Source: Andalucia godoyi And28 (taxonomy: Eukaryota; Protista; Jakobida). Taken from it: a DNA stretch of 64,000 bases. Shown here in pieces: positions 14,306-52,700 of the stretch; the stretch's first letter is position 1; the number at the start of each line of letters is the position of its first letter. A program made the translations under genes and the position numbers. The stretch lies in contig VRVR01000048.1 of NCBI GenBank assembly GCA_009859145.1, forward strand, positions 39,328-103,327, in the 5' to 3' direction. The notes beneath the pieces were generated by a model. That model was not told the origin of the DNA and made no database searches. It saw only the letters and a program-made list of their open reading frames with translations.

Positions 14306-17300
14306 CTATTTGTACAAGTGTCTTTGGCGGAGCGCAAATCCCTCCTTGAGAATCCGTTCGGGGACAGCATCGAACCCAACGCAAAGCTTCCACCAGACGC
14401 CCGACACTCGTGCGGCCATGAAATCCGACTCGGACTGGACCACATCTGGAATGCTTCCACGGATGAGCTGAATCCGGACGGCTTCGGGACCCTGGTCGCT
14501 TACTTCGGATGACACGGCGTGGACCAGTGGAGAGACCGGGGACTTGACAGTTACCACCAAGCTTGCCTCGTCTTCCTCGTCATCCCCGTCCGCTGGATCG
14601 ATGAAATCAGTACCGGAATGCTGTGGGTGAACGCTCGGTGCGCTCGACAACCGCAAGCGAGCTGCTCGCGGATTCGGTCTCCGAACAGACGCGTTCGCAC
14701 TCGAGGCACGCTGATGAGTGGGCAGCGTGTCTGTTGTGCTCGTCGATCCAATGGAATTGACAGTCGAGCCCAGATCCTGCGCGACGAACGAGCTGTGCTG
14801 TTTGGGTGCATTGACATGATTCTTTCGAACCAAGGATACTGCAAATTCCCTGGAATCGTACGCATGAGCCTCGACAAGACCGAATTTCAGCACGCTTGCG
14901 ACGCGACGTTTCCAGCCATCAAGTGCAGTAACAAACCGATCTTCATCTGATTTGGTCTCAATAGAAAATGGCGGGACAGACACATGGACGAGCAGCAAGG
15001 AAGACGTAAAGGCACCAAACAAGTTCGAAACTTCAGAAGAACGCGAGGAAATCGCAGCTTCAAGAGCAACACAAGCGTTCATCCATACACTCAAGAACGA
15101 CAAGAGTGAATCGCAACGTGAGGTGTGGTGCGGAATTGTCAATGACGGCAGCAGTAGATAGCGGTTTTCGGGCGACGTGGCCTCTGCAATGGAAATTGGG
15201 GGCGCCTTCTGCGCGCTCGAGGAGGAAGATGTGGGCTTCTTGGAATTCGCGGTGATGGGCACGGTGGAAGGCTTGGGGTCCTTCAACACGGAGGGGATTG
15301 AGAAGGCATCCAATGGGTGTTTGGCACAGTGATATCGATTCATCGGCAGGAGAATAGACTCCACAGCAAACTGCGGATATGATTCCAGATTCAACACGCA
15401 ACGCGCCATGAGGGACGAGAGGACATCGGAAAGGAGGCCCTCTTCTTCCGCAAGCCTAGACAAGAAGGTCGACTCTCCGATCACCGAGCCAGAAGACGAA
15501 GCTGGTGCGACGCTCTTCGCTGACTTCTGAGATGCCAGAATTGCAAACGTAGTGGACCATGCTTCAAAGGTCCGAATCACCAAAGACAGTCTCGGCGGCT
15601 TAGCAGGAGCCACACGTGCACAGATGTTCTTGTGGTCGTCCAAACACTGCAGCAGACGCCACCACTTGAATCTTTTCGAGACAGCCTGCTTCACAGAAAT
15701 GCAATTGCGAGGAGTCGCAAACAAACAAGGCTCTACAAGGCTGCGGTCGATTCGCTCAAGTCCAACACGGAGCAACGACGACCACAGTACGTTCCAAGCC
15801 GAAGGCGACGCGGCAAGCGCTTCGCCGACAAAAGCAGGCGGTACAAGCTTGACGATCGTTCCGAGTGCGACGACCGCCTTTTCCTGATCCACAGGTCCGA
15901 CAACAAGAGCATCCAACTGGTCCTCGGCGTAGAACGAGCGCGGAGCAAGCGGATCCACGAAATCCAGTTCGCGAAACCGGTGTTCGAAAGGCAGGCACGG
16001 GCGCTGCGATCCGGAAATCGGGTCCAGCAGGTCCAAACAGGATCGCACAAGGGGACGCAAAATGTTTTGCAAGAAGAAACGATACTGCGCGCTCATGACC
16101 TCTGCATGAGATCTCGCAACAGTGCGGCCGGCGACCCCGGATCTTCTCGCCGAGTGCTTAGAGATTGTCGATTTTGCCTCCTGCTCGCTGGTAGATTCCT
16201 CTGCATACGAGTTATCGACAACATCGTCATTTGCGTCTGCAGACGCATCGGAAGAGTACGAAAATTGCATTGCATGTGCAATCAAGATCAATGCTCCATT
16301 CAACAGTAATGCTCGAAGAGTTGTCCGCGGTTCGTGATCATCCCAGTGGGTGTTGCCAATTGAAAGCCGTTTGCAAATAAGCTGAAACACAGCAAAGGCC
16401 ACATCCAAGTCGCATACGAGGAGATCCGGGCGTGGGAAAGCGAGAAATAGGTCGATTCTGGATTGTCGGAGACGATCATCGCGACTTACTGCACAAAGAG
16501 CCGTGGCATCGGCCGGGCTGACAGCAAGTGACGGAGACAAATACGCGATAGTCGTCGTTGTTGACGCTGCATGCGGCTGTTGTTGTGAATTGCGCAGTGC
16601 GTGGATCGATCGTGGAGCGTAGTCCGAGAAGTTCCGTGTAGGCACAAACATGGCTCTTGCAAAGGGCAATATCCACGGAAAATCGCGGGACGGATACACG
16701 ATTGGCGTATGAGACGGCACCAAGCCCAGCATCGTCGATACCCACTCTACAATAGCACTCTCTTCCGCAACTGCTGTCGCTTCCGCTTCCTCTTCCTCTT
16801 CCTCTTCCTCTTCTTCTTCTTCTTCTTCTTCTTCGGCTTCCTGCTGCGCATGCTGCCGGTCTTTCCTACGGTCGCCTTGAGTGCCGCTCTCTGGTGGATG
16901 CCTGGCCATTTCCAGCGATTTTCCCCCCGACGAAAGATCTGCATATCGCCTCGTGAGAATGCCATCCAGTGCTTCTGAAATGTGCTTCAACGGTCCCTTC
17001 GAAGCCAGCACGCAATGTGCTACAAGTTTCTGGACGGTATCATTCAGCGACATGAACCGCGACTGAACCACGCTCCAACTGGACAGCCGTCGTTCTCGCC
17101 CAGCCTCGCCCTCGGCGTCGTTTTCATGGCCATTGTCGTTGGCATGATCATTGCCGCTACCTTTCGACTGACGCGCAGTGGGCGGAATCTTGTTATTGTG
17201 CAGCAAGGACGCTGGATGTGCGAGCGGCAACAACGAAGCAAAATTGGCTACCTCGCACAGTCCTTTTGTCCAGTTGTCCACCTCGTCCGTTGGCACCCCG

Positions 17301-17899
17301 TCAAGAAGGATTTCGCACTCTCGGTTCGAAAACGAAAGCAGCGAAGCAGATGACATTCTAGCGCGCAGAAAATTCGCAATCTTTAGCGGAATTGGGATCT
17401 GATCAGACTCCTCCTCGTGCTCCTGCATCTGCTTTTGTTGCTTCTTCTGCTGCAGTTGCTGTACTGACTCATACATTGGAAAGTTGTCGTGCGAAAGACC
17501 CTCCATGTAGTCCGAGGCGGCCGCCAGCATCTCCAGCTTATCCAGCACTGTGCATGCTCGCTGGAACCTCCTGACCGCAGAGATCCATTCTTTGTGCATC
17601 TTTTCTTCCACGCGCGCCATTTCCGACACAAACCACACGAGATCGTCCAGATTCCGATCTCTGTCGTAAACCACCCGCACGGCAGAGCAAAACTCATCGA
17701 ATGTAAGCTGCGAAAACGAGTGTGGGTGCACATGAGCCATCCCTATTGCATGCATCGGGATCTCCAGTGACCCCAAAATGCGCGCAAGGTCTGCCGCAGA
17801 AATCGTGTTCGATGACGATGAGGGACGAAGCAGCGGCCATGCATTGCGGCACTGTTGCTCAAACGAAGCCGCCGCATCACTCGTCTGGTTCCGCTTCAT
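14306..17899 (-). CDS. Large protein of unknown function with an N-terminal EF-hand-like region
   Basis: 1197-aa ORF with an ATG start; ISAADLARIL...LTFDEFCSAV resembles degenerate EF-hands; contains a poly-Glu tract. Confidence 0.75.
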   Translation of the reverse strand: MKRNQTSDAAASFEQQCRNAWPLLRPSSSSNTISAADLARILGSLEIPMHAIGMAHVHPHSFSQLTFDEFCSAVRVVYDRDRNLDDLVWFVSEMARVEEKMHKEWISAVRRFQRACTVLDKLEMLAAASDYMEGLSHDNFPMYESVQQLQQKKQQKQMQEHEEESDQIPIPLKIANFLRARMSSASLLSFSNRECEILLDGVPTDEVDNWTKGLCEVANFASLLPLAHPASLLHNNKIPPTARQSKGSGNDHANDNGHENDAEGEAGRERRLSSWSVVQSRFMSLNDTVQKLVAHCVLASKGPLKHISEALDGILTRRYADLSSGGKSLEMARHPPESGTQGDRRKDRQHAQQEAEEEEEEEEEEEEEEEEAEATAVAEESAIVEWVSTMLGLVPSHTPIVYPSRDFPWILPFARAMFVPTRNFSDYAPRSIHALRNSQQQPHAASTTTTIAYLSPSLAVSPADATALCAVSRDDRLRQSRIDLFLAFPRPDLLVCDLDVAFAVFQLICKRLSIGNTHWDDHEPRTTLRALLLNGALILIAHAMQFSYSSDASADANDDVVDNSYAEESTSEQEAKSTISKHSARRSGVAGRTVARSHAEVMSAQYRFFLQNILRPLVRSCLDLLDPISGSQRPCLPFEHRFRELDFVDPLAPRSFYAEDQLDALVVGPVDQEKAVVALGTIVKLVPPAFVGEALAASPSAWNVLWSSLLRVGLERIDRSLVEPCLFATPRNCISVKQAVSKRFKWWRLLQCLDDHKNICARVAPAKPPRLSLVIRTFEAWSTTFAILASQKSAKSVAPASSSGSVIGESTFLSRLAEEEGLLSDVLSSLMARCVLNLESYPQFAVESILLPMNRYHCAKHPLDAFSIPSVLKDPKPSTVPITANSKKPTSSSSSAQKAPPISIAEATSPENRYLLLPSLTIPHHTSRCDSLLSFLSVWMNACVALEAAISSRSSEVSNLFGAFTSSLLLVHVSVPPFSIETKSDEDRFVTALDGWKRRVASVLKFGLVEAHAYDSREFAVSLVRKNHVNAPKQHSSFVAQDLGSTVNSIGSTSTTDTLPTHQRASSANASVRRPNPRAARLRLSSAPSVHPQHSGTDFIDPADGDDEEDEASLVVTVKSPVSPLVHAVSSEVSDQGPEAVRIQLIRGSIPDVVQSESDFMAARVSGVWWKLCVGFDAVPERILKEGFALRQRHLYK

Positions 17900-18956: not shown

Positions 18957-21900
18957 ATGGAAAACTCTGAAATTGGGTCCTCGACGATTGCTCTGGGAGA
19001 AGAAGAGTCTCTTCAGTATGGGCCGTTAGAAGAGTTCATCTACAACGTCACTCTGGATGCTGGTCGCTTGCGATTCCGGCGTCTGATCCAGTATTTTGGC
19101 GCATTTATCTGCTGGATGCAACTTTTATCCTTTGCTGCCTCCCCTTATCTTCCGTGGGATGGAAGCGGCGCAAGTACGTACAACTCCGGCTCGACGATCT
19201 CCGAAATCCTCTTTGTCCTCCGAGGAATACGGACCTTCACTCCGGAATCCTATTACGCAGACTACGCCGCAGTCACTGTGCATTTTTCGCTGGCGTGCAT
19301 CGCTGTCCTGTTTCTGCTGAGCTTGTGGTTTACTGTGTACCGGCTGAACGCAGGCGGAAACCCGCGACTATCCGCCGTCTACCGACCGATACTTCAAATT
19401 TTCAATACATACCCAGTCCTCTTTGCTCCTGTCTTCGCAGGACTCATGGCCGTGTGGAGATGCGATTTCAGTGTATCTGGAGCCGACGGAATTCCTCGAA
19501 TTGGCTTGCCATCGCAGTTGTGCTTTGCCACTCCGAATGTAATCCTCCTTGCTTTTTCGGCATTCGCCGCGATTCTGCTGATCCCCACCGTTTTCTTCTT
19601 TGCGCTCTTTTCGTACGACACTCGCCCGATTTCTAAAAATGACTTCGCAAGCATTGCAGGAATGCACCCCGCATTCTTCACTGCGGCGATTGCGACCCTG
19701 TCGATCGTGGAAGTGATTTCTGTACCGCTCACGTACTTTGCCTTGCCAGTCGCATCGATTCTGATGTTCGGTTTCCAACTCCGCAAGAGCTTGATTCGAT
19801 TTCCATTTTACTGCCCCCGAACGAACCATCTGTGCCACTCGGCGCTCTCCGTTGTGGTTTGTGTTTCATTCTTTGGACTGATTGCAGCCGGTGCACAGTC
19901 CACCTCCGTGTTTTATGTGATGATCGCCCTTGTTCCGTTCAGCGGTGTCGGTGGTTACTACTGGTCAAAACGGCAGCTGACGATTATCCGCACGCTTCGG
20001 ACATCGGCTTTCAAGTTTGAGGCACAAGCAGATGTTTTGGCAACTATGCCCTCGGGAATGTCCTCCGTGTGGGGAACCGAAGACGAAAATGCAATTCAGC
20101 TTCCTATTGCCAACGCGTTCCATGTGGAAGTGTATGCACGAACGACACAGCAGTCCGACTCCTGTGCATCCTCTGCTTGCGTGTCGCACTCCTCGATCGT
20201 GCCAGAAAACACAAATAGCGAGAACGGATCCGCTAGAAGTCGCACTCCGTCATTTGCCAAAAACGTCCCCATGTATGGACAAGGAGAGCACTCTCAGGCA
20301 GTCGAAGTGCTGGACCTCGTATTCAAACTTGGAAAGGACCTGTTTCCCAATTCTGCGTTTGTGGATTGTGCGCACGCGCTGTACGTCCTTGCGTTTTCGT
20401 CAAACACCAGACAGGCCTTTCGTTTGTCTTCGGATGCCGCGCAGCACACTACGACCCTCGTCGACCGGTACATGCTGTACTGCGTTCGGCGGCAGATTTC
20501 CGAAATTGAAGATGGTCGAGGAGGAGAAGACAACCTGCGCAGACGTCTTGCGGTTGCAAAAAAGCACCAAACCCTGTGTCGAGTGGCGCTGAGAAAATTC
20601 TGGTCCATGATTCTCAAGGAGAATGTAGACGAAAGCCAGCTGCCAAAGATCATCTCCTTGGTCGCAGAACACGAGCAGGAAGCGGAGAGACTATTTCGCA
20701 GAATCCTCGCCGAGTACGGGAATTCTCCGAGAGTGCTGCGCGCATACGGGGAATTCTTGCTTGAAATTCGCCAAGAGGAGATTCTGAGCAAGTTGTTCTT
20801 CCAAAAAGCCGAGGTCGCGGAGGAAAGCGGCGGAGATGCGACGGCAAACGAATCTGAATTCCAGAAGCGGTTGCGCCGTGCAGGAGCCATTTCCGAGTGC
20901 ATTGGCTCTCTCTCCGCTGGGCCCTATGATACGGAAGACGAAGACGACGAAGGGAGAGACTTTGAGCGCAATGGCACTGTCGATGTGGAGGTCGGGAAGC
21001 CTGGCTCAAAGTCTGTCATCGTGGACTCGGGCTTTGACAACTCCGTTGAAGCTGCATCGCCGCAGAATCCCCAAGGTCGAAAAACCTCCAAGGCTCTGGA
21101 GTGTGTGCATTCTGTCCAGCAAGGCTGGTCTTCGAGTTTCGTAGTCGGGGACATCCGCGAGAACGCGGAGCAAGCCGAGTCACAGAAACGCAGCTCCAGA
21201 CACCCCAGTTCCCCCGGGTCTTTTGAGTCTCGGAGGGTATCGATGGACAGTCCGGACAATGCAATGGTCGTGCTGGGGCGGAGCCGTCGTCGCTCTTCGA
21301 AAGGTGATGGTGGTGCCAGTGACAGGCACTGCAGTAACCACAACATCAGCAATAATGACGACAACCATTCTGTCGCCTCTGCGGGTGTCAGGAGCATTAG
21401 CGGCAGCAAACGTCAGTACTCAACAGCTGGGTCTTCCGTGGAATCGGACAGCAGCGTAACAGGACGAGCAATGGAGCGCCATATTCTGATGGGTGAAATT
21501 CGAAAGGGGTTTCACAAGCAAGCGCGAACGCTGCAGATTGCTTCCATTCTGATTGTCGTGGTTTTCGTAATCCTGCTGATTCTCTCGTATACTTTCTTCC
21601 AATCGTTCTTGACCACGATTACATCTCACGTGGCGAACTTGGAAGACCGCGGGAGTGCGCGCTCGGAGTCGCAGACGGCTCTGGTGTACGCAAAGTTGCT
21701 GCAACAGTATTCTGCAGCCAACGCAAACGGGAATCCGTCACCTTCGTATGTCGGCTACTTGGAAAAGGTGACAGGATCTTCTACGCACATGGCAACGTCT
21801 GTGACAGGCATCTTTGACTCGTTCTCAGGTAGTTTCTCCTCATCGGAACGTGCCTTCTGGACAAACAACGTAGGAAGCCGGAACTCCTTCTTTGTTCCTT

Positions 21901-24662
21901 TCGCTGCGAACGGAACTCTTTGGTACTCGCCGGCGAGCTTCTCCTTCCTCTCCATGACTGCGACGTACTCCAGCAATCTCAATTCTTTGGGAAGCATGAG
22001 CGCCTCCAGTATCGCCAGCCAGATGCAAGCGTGGTCCACGCGATCTACAAACTATGACTTCCTTGCTGTAATCAAGAACGGTGTGACATCTGTTTCCAGT
22101 GTGTTCAATGAGATGACCGCAAAATACGGTGTCCAAGCGCTTCGAGAGTATCTCTCGTCCAGCTTGCTCTTTCTGGGTGTGTTCTTTGCATGCGTGGTAG
22201 TAGCAATTGTGGCCCTTGGTCTCGCAGTATTCTTGCCGCTGTACCGAAGAGAAGTGAAGAACCACCACGCGGCGCTGCGGCTGTTTGGAATTGTTCCGAA
22301 GCCAGTCTTGAAAAGGATTGCAAAATCATTTAAAAAGGCAAAAACTGACGATGTCGAAAGCGCAGAGAAGGAAATCCAGATGGACATGGTGGACTTTTCC
22401 GAGCAGTCTTCCTCGTCCGTGCTGGACTCTCAAAGCGACGCATCCGTGGTGTCTGCTCTGTGGTTCCGATTTGGAGTGGTTGTGCTGTGGTTCATTTGCG
22501 CAGCGTCGAGTTTTATCGTAATTGCAGCAGTATCAGAAGGTACCCTGTCCTCTGCGGGTGCCGTCGCAAACCTGGCGGCGGAAAGAACATCGCTAGTTCG
22601 GCAGCTGCACTATCTCTCCGCAGAATGGTTCTCCCCTTCCGTTCCCATGGAGAACTCGACAACGTTCGATCTCAGTGGAGCATTTCCTTTTGCCAGTGTC
22701 GAAGGTCTGCAGAACACCATTGTTGAAAAGCTGCAGAGATTGCGGGCCGTGTACAATGCACTGAGTTATGGAGATGCCGCGCTTGACATCCCGTCGTCCG
22801 CGTCGTTGAGTAACTATGCAGAGCAGAAGTCCCTTATGAATGATCGTCGATGCTCGGTCGCTTCTGCCACGTTCACCGATGGCTCTGTTCCCATTGCAGC
22901 AATCCAGTGCATGTCGATGGACCAGTTGGTTTTTTCGTTTGCAGATCAGATTCAGCGCTTGATCTCGGCGACGTCGCCCTCGAGTATCATGCCATCGTCC
23001 TCTTCTTCTTCCTCGGCTGCATCGCAGGCGTACATGACGGCAATTGAATACATGAGCTTGAATGATTTGGCCACTCTTCTGCGCATCTCGACGGACAGGG
23101 TGGCCAAAGAGCGAAACAGTGCCCTGAAGACTTATTCGCTTATTGCAACCGCTTGCTTTGGTGTGATGCTGCCAGTTGGGATTGTCATTGCAGTCTTGTT
23201 GATCGGTCAAGGACTCTCGCGGCTCCAGGAGGACCACATTCACACAAAGAAGCTGCTGCTGCTGCTGCCTTCGGAGACTATCAACGGAACTCCCGTCATT
23301 CTGAACTTCCTGCTGTCAGGAAAGCGCGTCGATGAACTGAAACTGCAAGAGTCCTTGAAAGAGGAACAGGAGAAGACTAGAGCCATTCTACAAAACACTT
23401 CGGATGGTGTGGTGGTTGCAGATGATTCCGGAATGATTGAGATGGTGAACAATGCAATGTCCAAGATCTTCCAGTACAAACATGAGGATCTGATTGGTGC
23501 AAACATCAAAATCATTCTTCCCCAAGACCTGGCAGAGCGCCATGATCAGCTAATCAAGAACTACGTTGAAAATCCCAATCGCACGTCGAAGCTCGTTGGC
23601 CGGTCCCTCGAGCATCCTGCCGTTCGAATGGACGGTAGTGTTGTGCCGGTGCGAGTTACTCTAACGGAGGCGAACATCAACAAGAAGCGTTTGTTTTGTG
23701 CTTTCATCCAGGACTTGACAAACATTCAGAAAGAAAAACTTGAAATGCAGTCACAGCTTCTCCGCATCGAGACTGTGATGAAAGCGACCACGGAAGGAAT
23801 CTTCATCACGGACGAAGCAGGGAACATTCAGTCCATCAACGACGCAGCTTCCAGAATGTTTGGTTACTCGAAAGAAGAAATGTGCGGCCAGAACGTGAAG
23901 ACGCTGATGCCCGAGCCGCATCGCTCCCAACATGACAGCTATCTCGAAAACTACTTGGCGACCGGAAAATCAAAGATTATTGCAAATGGGCGAGAAGTGG
24001 TAGCAGTCAAAAAGAACGGAGAGCCGATCTCAGTTTTTGTGAACGTGCTGCACGGTAAGTTGGAGCAATCCAGGTATCTGGCAGACGGTTCATCCGACAC
24101 GACTTGCGCTGCCGCTGCCGCTGCCTTTTTTGCGGCGTTTGTTCGTGACCTCACCGAGACAAAACGAAAGGAGGACGATCTCATCCTGAACAATGAGAAG
24201 ATCCAGGCAGTTATCAAAGCGTCCAGAGACGGGGTCGTTGTCTGCGACGATCGCGGAATCATCGAATCCGTCAATCCGTCCTTCTCCGACCTTCTTGGCT
24301 ATTCTCGTGACGAAGTGCTGGGACAAAACATTCGCATGCTCGTTCCACTTGCGCATCGGATGGCACACGACGACTACATCAAGACATACCTCAAGACCGG
24401 CCAGTCGAATGTCGTCGGTTCCGGAAAGGACATTGAGGCGGTCACAAAGTCTGGTAAATCCATTCCCGTTTACCTCACAGTTCGCGAAGGTCGTGTTCGT
24501 GATCGTCGCTTCTTTGCAGCATTTCTGAGGGACACTCAGGAACAAGTGCGAGTGCTTCGAGAAAAAGAAGACAAACTGGACGTTTTCAAGAGCGTTCTCA
24601 CCAGTGTCGTCCCTCCCACTGTTGCAGAAAAGCTCATTCAGGATCTGGAATCGTCAGCGTCA

Positions 24663-24694
<32 letters not shown>

Positions 24695-25283
24695 CAGTGA
24701 ATCACTGGACAGGAGTGTGTCTTCGACAAATTCTTCAGTGGAAATCATTCCCTCTTGTACTGTTTGCTTTGCGGACCTGGTGAACTTCACTCGTATATCT
24801 TCTCAAAAGTCGCCGACGGAAATGATCGATCTGATCAGTCGCATTTTCAGCATCTTTGACGACCTTGTCGTGAAGCATAACATAGAAAAGATCAAGATTA
24901 TCGGTGATGCGTACATGGCAGTTTGCAACATGTTCAAAAGGCGAGTGGATCACGCGTACGTGATGTGCGAATTTTCCCTCGATCTTGTTTCAGAGATTCA
25001 GAAATTCAATCTCGAAACTGGACTGGACATTGGTGTCCGGATTGGTCTTAATTCTGGATCGGCAGTTGCTGGCATCCTCAAGACACGGTTCCGAACGTTT
25101 GACATTTACGGCGACTCGGTCAACATCAGTTCGCGGATGGAACACACGGGCAAGAGCATGCGCGTCCACATCTCCCAGAGCACGTATAATTTTGTGCGCG
25201 ACAAGTACCAGTTCGAAGAAGACACGCAGGACATCAAGGGCGTCGGTCGTGCAACTTGCTACTTTATCACCAACCGCATTTGA
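18957..25283 (+). CDS. Multi-pass membrane adenylate cyclase with TmcB/TmcC-like N-terminus and three FixL-type PAS domains
   Basis: About 8 N-terminal TMs; TmcB-like helical region (LRKFWSMIL...AERLFRRILAEYGNSPRVLRAYGEFL); further TMs; three PAS domains (about 23380-24540); class III cyclase (FADLVNFT, KIKIIGDAYM, FDIYGDSVNISSRME) with ATP-type K and D determinants. Confidence 0.92.
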
Positions 25284-25411: not shown

Positions 25412-26356
25412 TCAAAACGACGTTCCGAAGAGCGGCATGATGTTTGCCATGAACCAATCCTTGTCGGGGGTGTGCGGATAGTCCGGATGCGTGCACGACG
25501 CCGTCAGGAACTTGAGTTTTCCTGCTTCGTCCAAAGTCTTGAGCCCAATCCAGTCTCCCTTGTACGTTTCCGATTCCTGCAGCGGAACGACCTGTCGATC
25601 CGCGACTCCAAACTGCAGATCTTGGACTTTCGCCGCAGACTGCGCGGCTTGCCAGAATTCAAACCAGCCTGACTCTACAGGAAACACGACCTTGTCTCCC
25701 GTCGACTTCACCATGACAAACATTTCGAGGGCGATCATGTTCTCTCTGTACTGCGGGTTCTTGGTCGGTCCTTCATTGTTGATATCCGGCAAGTACGACG
25801 CCTTTGCCAGGTACTTGTCATACTGCGCAGGGTCTTTCCAGTACCCCGCAAACGAATACGACTGCTGCATCCAGTCCTCATACACCACTGTCGACAGCAC
25901 ATTCCAGATCTCTGACGGCAAGAACGACACATACGGAGCCGAAAACACACCTTCGTGCACTCCCCCGAGCGTGACGTACCGCTTTACGCGGTGTTCGTTA
26001 TCGCACTTTTCAATGAATCCGCGCGTAACAAGCGAGCCCTGTGAGTATCCCAAAAGATGGAACCCACGCGCAAGTCTCGGGTCCTTTGCAGGCGACACCG
26101 CATCGCAAAACGCCTGGACTTGCTCCTGCATCGGCATATGCATTGAGTCATGGCTGCCGTCCCCGACTTCAACCGACCGCGTGTAAATCCCGGGATACGT
26201 CGAGTTGATCCATCCGAGCAGCTCGTCCATGTCACTCGCCTGCGCAGATATACCATGCATCACAACTACCGGAACATAGTCGGGCGCGCTTTGCACCCTT
26301 GAAATCCCTAAAATCACACACACCAGCAATACCACACTCCACCGAACCACACTCAT
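25412..26356 (-). CDS. Palmitoyl-protein thioesterase (PPT1/PPT2 family), secreted or lysosomal
   Basis: Signal peptide from ATG 26356; PVVVMHG, GYSQG nucleophile motif, GYWKDP, GDKVVFP, LKTLDEAGKL, CTH. Confidence 0.9.
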   Translation of the reverse strand: MSVVRWSVVLLVCVILGISRVQSAPDYVPVVVMHGISAQASDMDELLGWINSTYPGIYTRSVEVGDGSHDSMHMPMQEQVQAFCDAVSPAKDPRLARGFHLLGYSQGSLVTRGFIEKCDNEHRVKRYVTLGGVHEGVFSAPYVSFLPSEIWNVLSTVVYEDWMQQSYSFAGYWKDPAQYDKYLAKASYLPDINNEGPTKNPQYRENMIALEMFVMVKSTGDKVVFPVESGWFEFWQAAQSAAKVQDLQFGVADRQVVPLQESETYKGDWIGLKTLDEAGKLKFLTASCTHPDYPHTPDKDWFMANIMPLFGTSF

Positions 26357-26680
26357 CGTTTCCCCCTTCACACGCACTAAAACTGCACTCACTCAGACAC
26401 TCCAATTGTAATCTTTTAAATTTCAAACAAGTAAATTAAACCTTCTTTTTTTTTGAGTAATGAATTAATTAATTAAACAAACTCAATATAAAAACCAAAA
26501 CACCTTTTGATAGGAGTGCTTATATACCAAACCCAAAATGCCCAATGCGGGGGAGAGCTTTTGCAGAAACACAGACGTTGCTCCGCTACTAAAGTGAGTG
26601 CGTCTGCGGGATCATGAAATCCACCGTAAATTCTGCGGAGACTGCCCCCATGCTACAGTGGATTCTGTTGCTCTAACTTG

Positions 26681-39232: not shown

Positions 39233-39454
39233 CACGGTCGCCCAGCTTTGCGTATCAATGTTGAACATGAAAGCAATACGATTGTCTTACCGTAGTCAAG
39301 TCCAGCATTTCTTCATTCCTCACTTTTTCTTCTGTTCTGTTTATTTGTGTTTATTATAATCGAACCCTCAAGCAGCACCTTTCGTCAAAGACATCGACAA
39401 AACATCCCATGGCTCCAAAGAGAGGGATCTTCCCGACAAACTCAAACCGGCCAT
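39233..39454 (-). repeat. 222-bp inverted copy of 26881-27102
   Basis: One mismatch in 222 bp (tacacaaagc vs tacgcaaagc). Confidence 0.95.
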
Positions 39455-49761: not shown

Positions 49762-52700
49762 TAGTCATGGGGCTAACGTAACGCATGTTAGGCTAACGTG
49801 CGATGCTGGCCACAGTTAATCTCCGCTAACTGGATGAGAGTTGACGCTAACGCCAGGCCGCCAGGCGTCAGCATCGGCGACTTGACGCTGTCTCCCGCCA
49901 AAATTCGGCGGGAGCACAAACAACACAAATCCCCAAGAGGCCGAGACCCTTATCTTTCGGTTTGGACATTTTGACCTTTCCAATTTCCATGATCATTCTT
50001 CTCTTTTCGAGAGCAGTCAAGTGTGTCTGTTTATCAAGATTTGGGTGTGCCTTGAATATTTCATGTCTAAAACTTCAGAATCTGTTGCTGATCTCAGGGA
50101 GAAGGCTCGTCAGATTTTAAAGAATCGCACTGTTTCTCAACGACAAACTGAACCGTTCGCCTGGTCTTTGCCGATAGTGCGTTGGCATGACAAATACCCG
50201 CTGGTTCCAGTTGATACTTCTTCGCGCTCCTCTCCTGTTTGGAATTTTTTTGGTGTTTCCCCCGAAAATGATTCTGAAATGATCCGTGACAGCAAGGAAC
50301 ATCCAGAAGTTTGTTGTGCACTATGCGTTTTCAGAATGAGCGAGAAGCCGAAGACGTATCCGTATCTAAAACCGACAACGGACAAGCTTCGAGATCATTT
50401 AGAATCGAAACATCTTTCGGACTGGAAAGCTGTTTCCTCGCCGCAAACAGGCGTCGTACCCTCTATCGGCAACTTCTTTGCCAAGCCTCTGACAAATAGT
50501 CGCAAAAAGGAACTCCGTGAAGCCATTGTTTATATGATCTGCCATGATATTCAACCTTTGTCTGTTGTGGAGAACAAAGGTTTCAAGCAGCTCCTCGAAA
50601 TGCTTGAGCCAAGATTTCAAATCCCGGATCGACAGCATCTGTCACAGACGTTGTTGCCTCAGATTGAAAAGGAGATTCATGATTTTGTCGGCGATTCTCT
50701 TTCACAGGAGGCATCAGGAGTTTCTCTGACGACAGATGGATGGTCGTCGAAAAATGGCCATCATTTTGTTGCAGTGACTGCGCATTTTGTGAATGAGGAC
50801 TTCCAAATTGTGAATGTTCTGTTGAGATGCCTGCCCTCAGGGGAATCCACGGACTCCTTGCGCACAAGCCTTTCCAAATGCCTGGAGGATTATGGAATTC
50901 GACATGATGCGATCGTTTCAGTAACGACTGATAACGCTGACGTGCAAGTGAACGCCGTTGTGAATGCCAGTCTCCCGCATCTTCGTTGTTTCATCCATAC
51001 TTTGCAATTAGCAGTCCAAGGATCTCTTAATAACCGAGTGTGTGATTTCGTCGTTGAAAAGGCCAAGAAAATAATGGAATTCTTCCATCGCAGCAATAAG
51101 GCAACTCATGAACTGGTAGAGTATCAAAAACGAGCCGGCATCGCCTCTCCTCTCACAATCAAAACTGAATGTAAGACGCGATGGAACTCTCTTCTGTATG
51201 CGCTTGAACGACTGCTGAAACTGAAAGACTTCATCGAACTTGTGTTGGTTGCGATCAAGCGTGAAGATCTACGGATGAATTCTGTTGAATGGTCGTTCAT
51301 TGAATCGTTGCTTCCTGCGTTGCGTCCTTTCGAACAAGCCACCCGTTGGTTCTCCATGAATCAAGAAACGGTTGCAAGCCTCGTTATTCCGACTGTTAGG
51401 ACGCTATTCAGTCTCTATCCCGATCACGATGAAAGAACGATCCGAGAGCTGCAAGCCAACATGAAGACAGTCGACAAAACTGACGTGATCGACGCATCCA
51501 TCGCTCCACTGGAGTTTATTTTTGTGGATGAATCTCTGGACTACGTAGGACCAACTTCCAAAAAATCTCGCAAGAGAAAATCGCAGTGTCCGCAAACGGT
51601 TGAAGCAGAAGTTTCATCGGTGACTTCCGAGTTGTGCAATGCAGCACTTTCTTCAATTCGTTTAGCTTTTGGAAATCACCTAAGGGCGCGTTTGAAAACG
51701 TTTCTGGATTCATCGATGCTAAAGATGTGCACTCTCCTCGACCCGCGAGTCAAAACAGGGTACATGCCATCGAGCGAAAGACGTGAGGTAGAACGGTTGT
51801 TATCTGATTTGTTGCGTCGAGAAGCAGGATTCGGGAATGATCCCGCTCCGTCTCCAAGGAACAATACTCCACACTCTCCATCCGATGCTTCTCAAAATTT
51901 CCGGCTCATAGGTCCGATATTTGAGGACGACGAGCATGTATCCAAAGATGCTTTTGAGTCAATTGTCACGTCTTATATGAATCATGCATGTCGTTGGCTT
52001 GGTGACGATCTTCCAACGTGGTCTGAAACGTGGAAATCGCTGCAGTCACTGTTTCCTCAAGTTGCTGCCATAGCCCGCAGATACGGAGGTGTTCAAGCAT
52101 CCAGCGTGAGCAGTGAGCGTGTGTTCTCCATTTCTGGATACACAATATCTGACCGACGTCGCCGTCTTCATCCGACCACTGTCAACAGTATGATGCTTAT
52201 CCACGCAAACTACGATTTTTGCAAGACGGACCGCAAAAGAAGGGCAGACGCTGGTTGCGAAGATGCGAGGCCTCCTAAACAGCCTGCAATTTCGCCTTCA
52301 GATCCCAGTCCATTGCATCGGAAATGAGTGAAGAGTATTTTCCAAGACAGGTTTCAGTTATTTAATGAATGTGTGTTTTGCAACATCCTGTAATACGTCC
52401 AAAAGAGCAAGGAATGAAATCATTGGATTATTTAACATTCATGTCCGGAAGTATATATATCTGTGTACAATAATCGTATGGCGCGAAAAATGAGAACGTC
52501 GTCTATAATACCCCTTCGCATATATATTACGCAGGACCCACGCACGTCATCACGTTCTCACGATAGCTTGATCCGCGACAAACTGTAATTTGTTTTTTCA
52601 AGTGAGACATGAGAGCAACAAGTGGAGAAATGTGCGTGAAAATGCGTAAATCGTAACACATGTGTGGTTGCCCATGTATCTTCGTCCCTGCACAATGTCG

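Follow-up and report, generated by a model that had tools for sequence, protein, structure and literature searches.

Can a eukaryotic cell wire a heme-based gas sensor of the bacterial FixL type directly to the synthesis of cyclic AMP (cAMP)? This question is raised by a long gene of Andalucia godoyi And28, a free-living soil flagellate of the jakobids, which lies in a stretch of 64,000 nucleotides (GenBank assembly GCA_009859145.1, contig VRVR01000048.1, forward-strand positions 39,328 to 103,327) that we call the window and to which all coordinates below refer. To our knowledge, the well-characterised direct heme-based O2 sensors are mostly bacterial. An earlier note on this DNA, made from the letters alone, had proposed that positions 23370-25283 encode three FixL-type PAS domains fused to a class III cyclase. 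This interval corresponds to amino acids (aa) 1472-2108, the C-terminal 637 residues of a larger open reading frame (ORF), and covers its PAS-cyclase part; the sequence and the residues named in the note (H1529, H1659, R1679, H1804 and K1824) are present as described.

The full protein consists of a polytopic TmcB-like membrane region followed by three tandem PAS domains, a transducer helix and a class III cyclase domain. A Pfam scan of the whole protein placed TPR_TmcB at aa 527-624, the three PAS at aa ~1470-1870 and a single Guanylate_cyc domain at aa 1932-2105. We suggest, with a probability of about 0.55, that the product is a homodimeric, membrane-anchored TmcB-like adenylate cyclase controlled by a cytosolic chain of three putative heme-PAS domains of the FixL/DosP type. 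The gene and its PAS domains are located as follows:

18957-25283, + strand: whole gene, TmcB-like membrane adenylate cyclase; intronless ORF of 2108 aa with an ATG start, stop codon within the coordinates
23370-23726, + strand: PAS1, aa 1472-1590; codons of H1529 at 23541-23543, R1549 at 23601-23603 and L1551 at 23607-23609
23754-24161, + strand: PAS2, aa 1600-1735; codons of H1659 at 23931-23933, K1673 at 23973-23975 and R1679 at 23991-23993
24189-24536, + strand: PAS3, aa 1745-1860; codons of H1804 at 24366-24368 and K1824 at 24426-24428

PAS domains of the FixL/DosP type and their putative heme pockets

Each PAS domain was searched singly with phmmer against all PDB sequences, and for all three the top match was FixL (PAS1 5e-13; PAS2 7e-20 and PAS3 3e-19, the latter two to RmFixL). 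The next matches were again heme-binding, namely DosP/EcDOS (1e-9 to 5e-12) and, for PAS1, also the FG214 heme-PAS (7e-9). The best non-heme PAS (flavin adenine dinucleotide-binding, LOV and WalK/VicK domains) scored between 4e-8 (PAS3, LOV) and 3e-5 (PAS1), which makes them 10^3 to 10^10 times weaker, a difference far beyond chance. Identity of PAS1-3 to the rhizobial heme domains was 28-40%; PAS2 aligns with FixL without gaps over 88-91 residues and reaches 40% identity to RmFixL over 88 ungapped residues. Among the NCBIfam models the rhizobial FixL model sens_FixL_Rhizob was the best (229.6 bits over three stretches), followed by the generic PAS S-box, and DosP was the next specific family after FixL.

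The predicted folds point in the same direction. AlphaFold2 models of PAS1 and PAS3 were built on an alignment with bacterial FixL-like domains and had a mean predicted local distance difference test score (pLDDT) of 93.5 and 94.3, respectively. The top 20 Foldseek matches of PAS3 in the PDB were all FixL heme domains, with root mean square deviations of 0.8-2.3 A, and the top 32 of PAS1 were all heme-binding PAS (FixL, EcDOS/DosP and FG214). Target-normalised TM-scores against FixL heme domains reached 0.95 for PAS3 and up to 0.95-0.96 over PAS1 and PAS3 together. The earlier note had called for a comparison of each PAS with FixL and EcDOS by hidden Markov model and by structure; in this comparison FixL came first and DosP/EcDOS next, and no domain was placed among the non-heme PAS. 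The phmmer search, the FixL model and the predicted folds all give the same clade, and by sequence, and for PAS1 and PAS3 also by modelled fold, PAS1-3 belong to the FixL/DosP heme-PAS clade.

Further we looked at the residues of the putative heme pocket. The note had read a proximal His in every repeat, and H1529, H1659 and H1804 indeed all lie at the F-alpha helix position, in a His column that is invariant in a 26-sequence alignment (A1); all three are kept in the single orthologue described below. For PAS2 the note had pointed to an Arg 20 residues after this His, the spacing of His200 and Arg220 in BjFixL. This spacing was confirmed on the BjFixL chain, where it runs from His61 to Arg81 in chain numbering (His+20), and R1679 occupies the Arg220 position in an ungapped FixL alignment and is kept in the orthologue. 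The distal Arg lies on the G-beta strand (R220 in BjFixL, R97 in DosP) and is required for O2 binding and signalling in FixL and also for the O2 affinity of DosP. PAS2 is the only one of the three with this FixL-type distal Arg. At the corresponding position PAS3 has K1824, the Lys that the note had reported.

PAS1 was described in the note as ambiguous owing to a 2-residue insertion, and we agree. R1549 is numerically His+20 and HMMER aligns it with Arg220 of BjFixL, whereas HMMER against RmFixL, MAFFT and the DSSP register all put L1551 there; two of three alignments and the register of the model thus assign an insertion of 2-3 residues to the FG loop. In the AlphaFold2 secondary structure the FG loop of PAS1 is about 3 residues longer than that of PAS3 and its G-beta strand starts at S1550, which places L1551 at the Arg220 position and R1549 at i-2. 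As modelled, PAS1 most likely lacks a canonical distal Arg at the FixL position, and R1549 would be equivalent to BjFixL Ile218, on the same strand face. None of the three PAS has a Met at His+18, the position of the distal Met that serves as sixth heme ligand in DosP, so that a five-coordinate heme, open to small ligands, would be expected.

Several observations weigh against heme binding and O2 sensing. The position of the propionate-binding R206 of BjFixL is taken by N1535 in PAS1, N1665 in PAS2 and T1810 in PAS3; this feature is not universal in the clade, as an R206 equivalent is missing from many bacterial FixL-like PAS in A1. The position of H214, also a propionate contact, is basic only in PAS2 (K1673, conserved), while PAS3 has N1818 (Arg in the orthologue). 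K1824 of PAS3, which is Asn in the orthologue, stands where the other eight PAS-cyclase fusions of a nine-sequence alignment (A3) have Arg. The AlphaFold2 models are heme-free and derive from a FixL-like alignment, so that they speak for fold and register and not for occupancy of the pocket. With a single orthologue and PAS identities of 51-66%, the retention of three His is weak statistical evidence when taken alone. Finally, about 40% of the FixL/DosP PAS cluster lack the His and presumably heme, and the PAS domains of eukaryotic PASK, which derive from this cluster, have lost heme (PMC10468136).

The absence of a distal Arg at the FixL position in two of the three PAS, and the Lys of PAS3 in the domain next to the output, also suggest another possibility, namely that heme is bound and the protein responds in the cell to NO, CO, redox state (ferric or ferrous heme) or heme availability instead of O2; the expected five-coordinate heme, with no DosP-like Met, would be compatible with this. 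We regard it as unlikely. PAS2 carries the full FixL-type His/Arg pair, conserved in the orthologue, and those FixL-type domains with such a pair that have been tested are sensors of O2.

As an observation of its own, PAS2 contains a long insert in the H-beta/I-beta loop (aa ~1700-1727, positions 24054-24137), which includes the poly-Ala run CAAAAAAFFAA. An insert occupies this place in the orthologue too, but its sequence is different.

The cyclase domain and the proposed signal path

What the PAS domains might control is given by the C-terminal part of the protein, which holds the following elements:

24537-24644, + strand: linker helix and transducer-like segment FKSVLTSVVPPTVAEKLIQD (aa 1877-1896), which aligns with the helix before AC9 C1
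24651-24698, + strand: (Ser-Ala)n low-complexity insert, aa 1899-1914, between the transducer helix and the cyclase beta1 strand
24750-25271, + strand: class III cyclase catalytic domain, aa 1932-2105; Pfam PF00211 (Guanylate_cyc) E 4.7e-49, best PDB match AC9 at 1.3e-50

HMMER alignments to the C1 and C2 domains of AC9, together with A3, identified the metal-binding D1940 and D1984, the substrate (adenine)-selecting K1980 and D2049, the transition-state pair N2056 and R2060 and the phosphate-binding R2028. The catalytic residues are invariant in A3 and all are kept in the orthologue, so that the claim of a complete cyclase of the ATP type, made in the note, holds. As one chain carries the full catalytic set, a homodimer with two active sites and cAMP as product is predicted, and the sequence leads us to predict an active homodimeric class III (IIIa-like) adenylate cyclase. 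It should be noted that the Pfam family spans adenylate and guanylate cyclases, and that the structure matches include rhodopsin-guanylate cyclases. A guanylate cyclase or a catalytically inactive scaffold is nevertheless very improbable, as the six canonical catalytic residues are all in place and are retained by the orthologue, and the Lys/Asp pair is typical of ATP-specific enzymes, unlike the Glu/Cys of guanylate cyclases.

The Pro and Leu of the segment FKSVLTSVVPPTVAEKLIQD are invariant in A3, and we take this segment to be the cyclase-transducer element of class IIIa/b enzymes reported by Ziegler et al. 2017. It is followed by an insert of 35 aa, partly (Ser-Ala)n, in front of the cyclase domain. 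A similarly long insert without repeats is present in the orthologue, but in none of the other seven fusions of A3.

From the clade membership and the retained His we infer heme binding by PAS1-3 and a gas or redox control of cAMP synthesis. The proposed signal path would start with the binding of heme b by each PAS, or at least by PAS2, through its proximal His. O2 would bind next, with PAS2 as the most plausible site; there R1679 might form a hydrogen bond to the ligand like Arg220 in FixL. Ligand binding would shift the FG loop and the heme propionates. This change might travel along the linker helices behind the D-x-T motifs (DLT, DLT and D-T) and then through the transducer helix, re-orienting the two catalytic domains and so changing cAMP synthesis. 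O2 could act on cAMP synthesis in either direction; in FixL the kinase is shut off by O2, and in DosP the phosphodiesterase is turned on.

The two PAS without a canonical Arg, PAS1 and PAS3, may hold a heme of low O2 affinity that favours CO, NO or redox signals, or they may act mainly as transmitters. The note had raised the idea of three hemes of graded affinity; with the distal Arg in PAS2 alone, this is a speculation.

Membrane part, orthologue and relatives

The note had described the protein as a eukaryotic membrane sensor. The gene belongs to Andalucia godoyi, and a Kyte-Doolittle hydropathy scan agrees with a polytopic membrane protein. Upstream of the PAS-cyclase arm we find:

19074-19946, + strand: N-terminal cluster of ~6-7 hydrophobic helices, aa ~40-330 (Kyte-Doolittle scan); 31% identity with the orthologue
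20535-20828, + strand: TPR_TmcB domain, aa 527-624, presumed cytosolic; Pfam PF25474, E 4.7e-16, 59.3 bits against a cut-off of 27; 64% identity with the orthologue
21528-23207, + strand: second membrane module with four transmembrane (TM) helices, aa 858-876, 1075-1093, 1174-1192 and 1399-1417 (hydropathy scan)
23208-23369, + strand: juxtamembrane segment before PAS1, aa 1418-1471, KKLLLLLPSETINGTPVILNFLLSGKRVDELKLQESLKEEQ; 74% identity with the orthologue, the most conserved stretch of the protein

In the hydropathy scan a Ser-rich low-complexity stretch precedes the second membrane module. Its four TM helices flank two presumed extracellular loops of ~200 aa (aa 877-1074 and aa 1193-1398), which gave no Pfam match and, when compared with each other, proved not to be internal repeats. 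As the number of TM helices is even, the TPR domain and the PAS-cyclase arm are placed on the same, presumably cytosolic, side of the membrane by this inferred topology. The two loops may form a second, independent input. The juxtamembrane segment, aa 1418-1471, matches no known domain.

An exhaustive search with aa 909-2108 detected one end-to-end collinear orthologue (P0054), a protein of 2040 aa with the same Pfam architecture which is encoded on a JGI metagenome contig of 20 kb. Neither the PAS-cyclase arm nor the full protein yielded an orthologue in word-indexed homologue searches, where all matches were bacterial PAS proteins. Identity to P0054 is 43% overall. It is highest in the juxtamembrane segment (74%), followed by PAS3 (66%), TPR_TmcB (64%), PAS1 and the cyclase (60% each) and PAS2 (51%), and falls to 25% and 40% in the extracellular loops. 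In addition to the three proximal His, P0054 keeps R1549, K1673 and R1679; it has Ile at the position of L1551. By these identities conservation is stronger in the PAS and cyclase domains than in the remainder of the protein, with purifying selection concentrated on the PAS-cyclase arm.

We then asked how common these pocket residues are. In a census of the 150 best matches the proximal His was present in 934 of 1171 FixL-like PAS domains, and 702 of these 934 also had Arg at +20. Fusions of a His/Arg PAS with a cyclase were found in a diatom (P0065, cluster member Conticribra weissflogii), in MMETSP transcriptomes (P0124), in the amoebozoan Phalansterium solitarium (P0142, with a TmcB-like N-terminus, and P0160) and in many metagenomic sequences; the metagenomic data also include a further protein with three PAS and a cyclase (P0115/P0222). 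The TmcB-like layout, with TPR_TmcB after an N-terminal multi-helix membrane region, is shared by P0054, P0142 and P0055. A. godoyi itself has at least one paralogue, ANDGO_01376 (P0188), annotated as 'Adenylate cyclase', which has a TmcB-like N-terminus and one PAS with Ile at the His column. Retention of the His is thus not automatic.

After the orthologue, the nearest relatives of the cyclase domain are the Phalansterium sequences, P0178 and the A. godoyi paralogue. The named nearest relatives of the PAS domains are bacterial (Adhaeribacter, Limibacter and a Nitrospinae bacterium), and many others are unnamed. On sequence grounds this pattern fits a eukaryotic cyclase lineage that carries bacterial-type PAS domains. 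A scan for a donor of the whole PAS-cyclase module covered bacterial and archaeal genomes, and the best 80 loci (L003-L082) among the matches listed were considered. They include many bacterial PAS-cyclase loci that are collinear, with 27-33% identity, and mostly cyanobacterial. A PAS was detectable beside the cyclase in 38 of the loci and had the His in 4, in none of them together with Arg; the count of zero His+Arg PAS beside a cyclase among these best 80 is indicative only. Two of the cyclase-adjacent PAS were of the LOV type (NCRFL motif). As a side observation, collinear genes for PAS, transducer helix and class III cyclase are common in the filamentous cyanobacteria Microcoleus, Microseira, Coleofasciculus and Symploca.

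These relatives bear on a further explanation, in which the PAS domains are heme-free and serve as modules for dimerisation and transmission, or bind another small ligand, and relay a signal from the extracellular loops or the TmcB-like membrane domain. The two loops and the large membrane domain could be the real sensor, heme is missing from many PAS of the FixL/DosP cluster (PMC10468136), the related TmcB-like cyclases P0188 and P0186 (the A. godoyi paralogue and a Phalansterium protein) have non-His PAS, and so do most of the bacterial cyclase loci sampled. We nevertheless find this explanation rather improbable, since each of the three PAS retains its His, also in the orthologue, only heme-binding PAS stand among the best matches in sequence and fold, and the PAS domains are 51-66% identical to those of the orthologue against 25-40% for the loops. 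Our preferred reading is still that of a cyclase under the control of putative heme-PAS.

The searches also brought up giant proteins of ~3000-4500 aa with 13 tandem FixL-like PAS (P0055, P0059-P0064, P0066 and others), in which nearly all PAS have the proximal His and most the +20 Arg. P0060 is from the prokinetoplastid Papus ankaliazontas, and P0055 has a TPR_TmcB domain like the cyclase protein. No output domain was recognised in P0055 and P0058, the two members that were scanned with Pfam.

In a wider and more doubtful reading, which we put forward tentatively, FixL-type heme-PAS would represent a widespread and unrecognised form of gas sensing in unicellular eukaryotes (jakobids, kinetoplastid relatives, Amoebozoa and diatoms), built on TmcB-like proteins with one to thirteen units. 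In the present protein O2 (or NO/CO) would be translated into cAMP, for instance in the aerotaxis of a flagellate, independently of prolyl-hydroxylase/HIF-type routes, and three serial hemes might give a graded or logic-gated response.

Known systems and genomic surroundings

The note knew of no characterised eukaryotic protein with this arrangement. The literature that we searched agrees. In it we found no paper, for any organism, on a class III cyclase joined to a heme-PAS, no account of a protein of this kind (including papers on oomycete PAS-cyclases and on Naegleria, Dictyostelium and Acrasis), and no discussion of the A. godoyi gene. The statement needs two qualifications, as a globin-coupled cyclase is known from Leishmania and similar uncharacterised proteins exist in other protists. 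Predicted proteins of similar architecture are unannotated or generically annotated in public data.

The Leishmania enzyme, HemAC-Lm, is presented in PMC7719234, with reference to Sen Santara et al. 2013, as a globin-coupled heme-based O2-sensing adenylate cyclase. It and other trypanosomatid O2-sensing cyclases share with our protein the fusion of a heme-based sensor (here putative) to a class III adenylate cyclase in a discoban, and it differs in being a soluble protein with a globin as heme domain, so that the two sensors are analogous and not homologous. The Pfam scan of the whole A. godoyi protein detected no globin family, which sets it apart from a globin-coupled cyclase of the HemAC-Lm type. 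We regard the Leishmania enzyme as the nearest functional precedent and as the sole characterised eukaryotic O2-sensing adenylate cyclase in the literature searched.

In sensor terms the closest system is FixL, the O2-sensing histidine kinase of Bradyrhizobium and Sinorhizobium. Common to both are the PAS clade, the proximal His on F-alpha, the distal Arg at His+20 in PAS2, and a D-x-T motif followed by a helical linker into the output domain. The A. godoyi protein differs by its class III cyclase output in place of a histidine kinase, three candidate heme-PAS in series instead of one, a eukaryotic host, a large polytopic membrane part, the lack of an Arg206 equivalent, and PAS1 and PAS3 without a canonical distal Arg. 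DosP/EcDOS, the heme-PAS c-di-GMP phosphodiesterase of E. coli, is the second-best group in both sequence and fold and likewise lets a heme-PAS directly control an enzyme of a nucleotide second messenger, whereas its outputs are GGDEF/EAL, its messenger is another one, and its Met at His+18 has no counterpart here.

Soluble guanylate cyclase resembles our protein in having a heme sensor that acts through PAS and a helical linker on a homologous class III cyclase domain. In that enzyme, however, the heme sits in H-NOX, the PAS is heme-free, the protein is a heterodimer, the product is cGMP and the ligand is NO. The whole-protein Pfam scan gave no H-NOX match, and together with the Lys/Asp substrate pair in place of Glu/Cys this argues that the A. 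godoyi protein is not a soluble guanylate cyclase. The TmcB-like proteins and cyclases (Dictyostelium TmcB, ANDGO_01376 and Phalansterium) have TPR_TmcB and the N-terminal membrane region in common with it. The cyclases among them carry one PAS (His/Arg in P0142, non-His in P0186 and the A. godoyi paralogue) or none, as opposed to the three His-bearing PAS of our protein and its orthologue. Bacterial fusions of PAS or LOV to a class III cyclase, such as the LOV-cyclase mPAC of Microcoleus, show the same layout of PAS, transducer helix and cyclase, and differ in that the cyclase-adjacent PAS are mostly non-His, two are LOV-type, and none is His+Arg among the best 80 loci.

Taken by its parts, the protein combines a FixL/DosP-like sensor with a class IIIa-like cyclase output and a TmcB-like membrane part. 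If the PAS domains bind heme, it would be the first FixL-type sensor of a eukaryote to be linked to cAMP and would offer a simple, testable model for the perception of O2 or other gases in a free-living soil flagellate. In that case it would also give access to a family whose members, among the sequences examined, have as many as 13 candidate heme-PAS units. As a research tool, the soluble arm of PAS1-3 and cyclase might serve to generate cAMP under the control of a gas.

The genomic surroundings are those of a eukaryote. The neighbouring genes in the window include RCC1, LRR, palmitoyl-protein thioesterase, RasGEF, dynamin, kinases and a hAT transposase, the genes lie on alternating strands, and the G+C content is ~51%. 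The draft genome of A. godoyi (VRVR00000000) is compact, at ~20 Mb, and most of the genes examined are without introns, which makes an intronless gene of 6.3 kb credible; cyclases are never mentioned in the genome paper (PMC7050145).

Downstream, the palmitoyl-protein thioesterase gene (25412-26392, - strand) converges on the cyclase gene, with the two stop codons only ~130 bp apart, a spacing that fits the tight gene packing reported for the A. godoyi genome. The divergent upstream gene (14306-17899, - strand) encodes 1197 aa with a long poly-Glu run and no Pfam match. Further away, an ORF of 768 aa (50021-52327, + strand) has a hAT-family transposase dimerisation domain together with DUF659, and is probably a hAT transposon or a domesticated copy.

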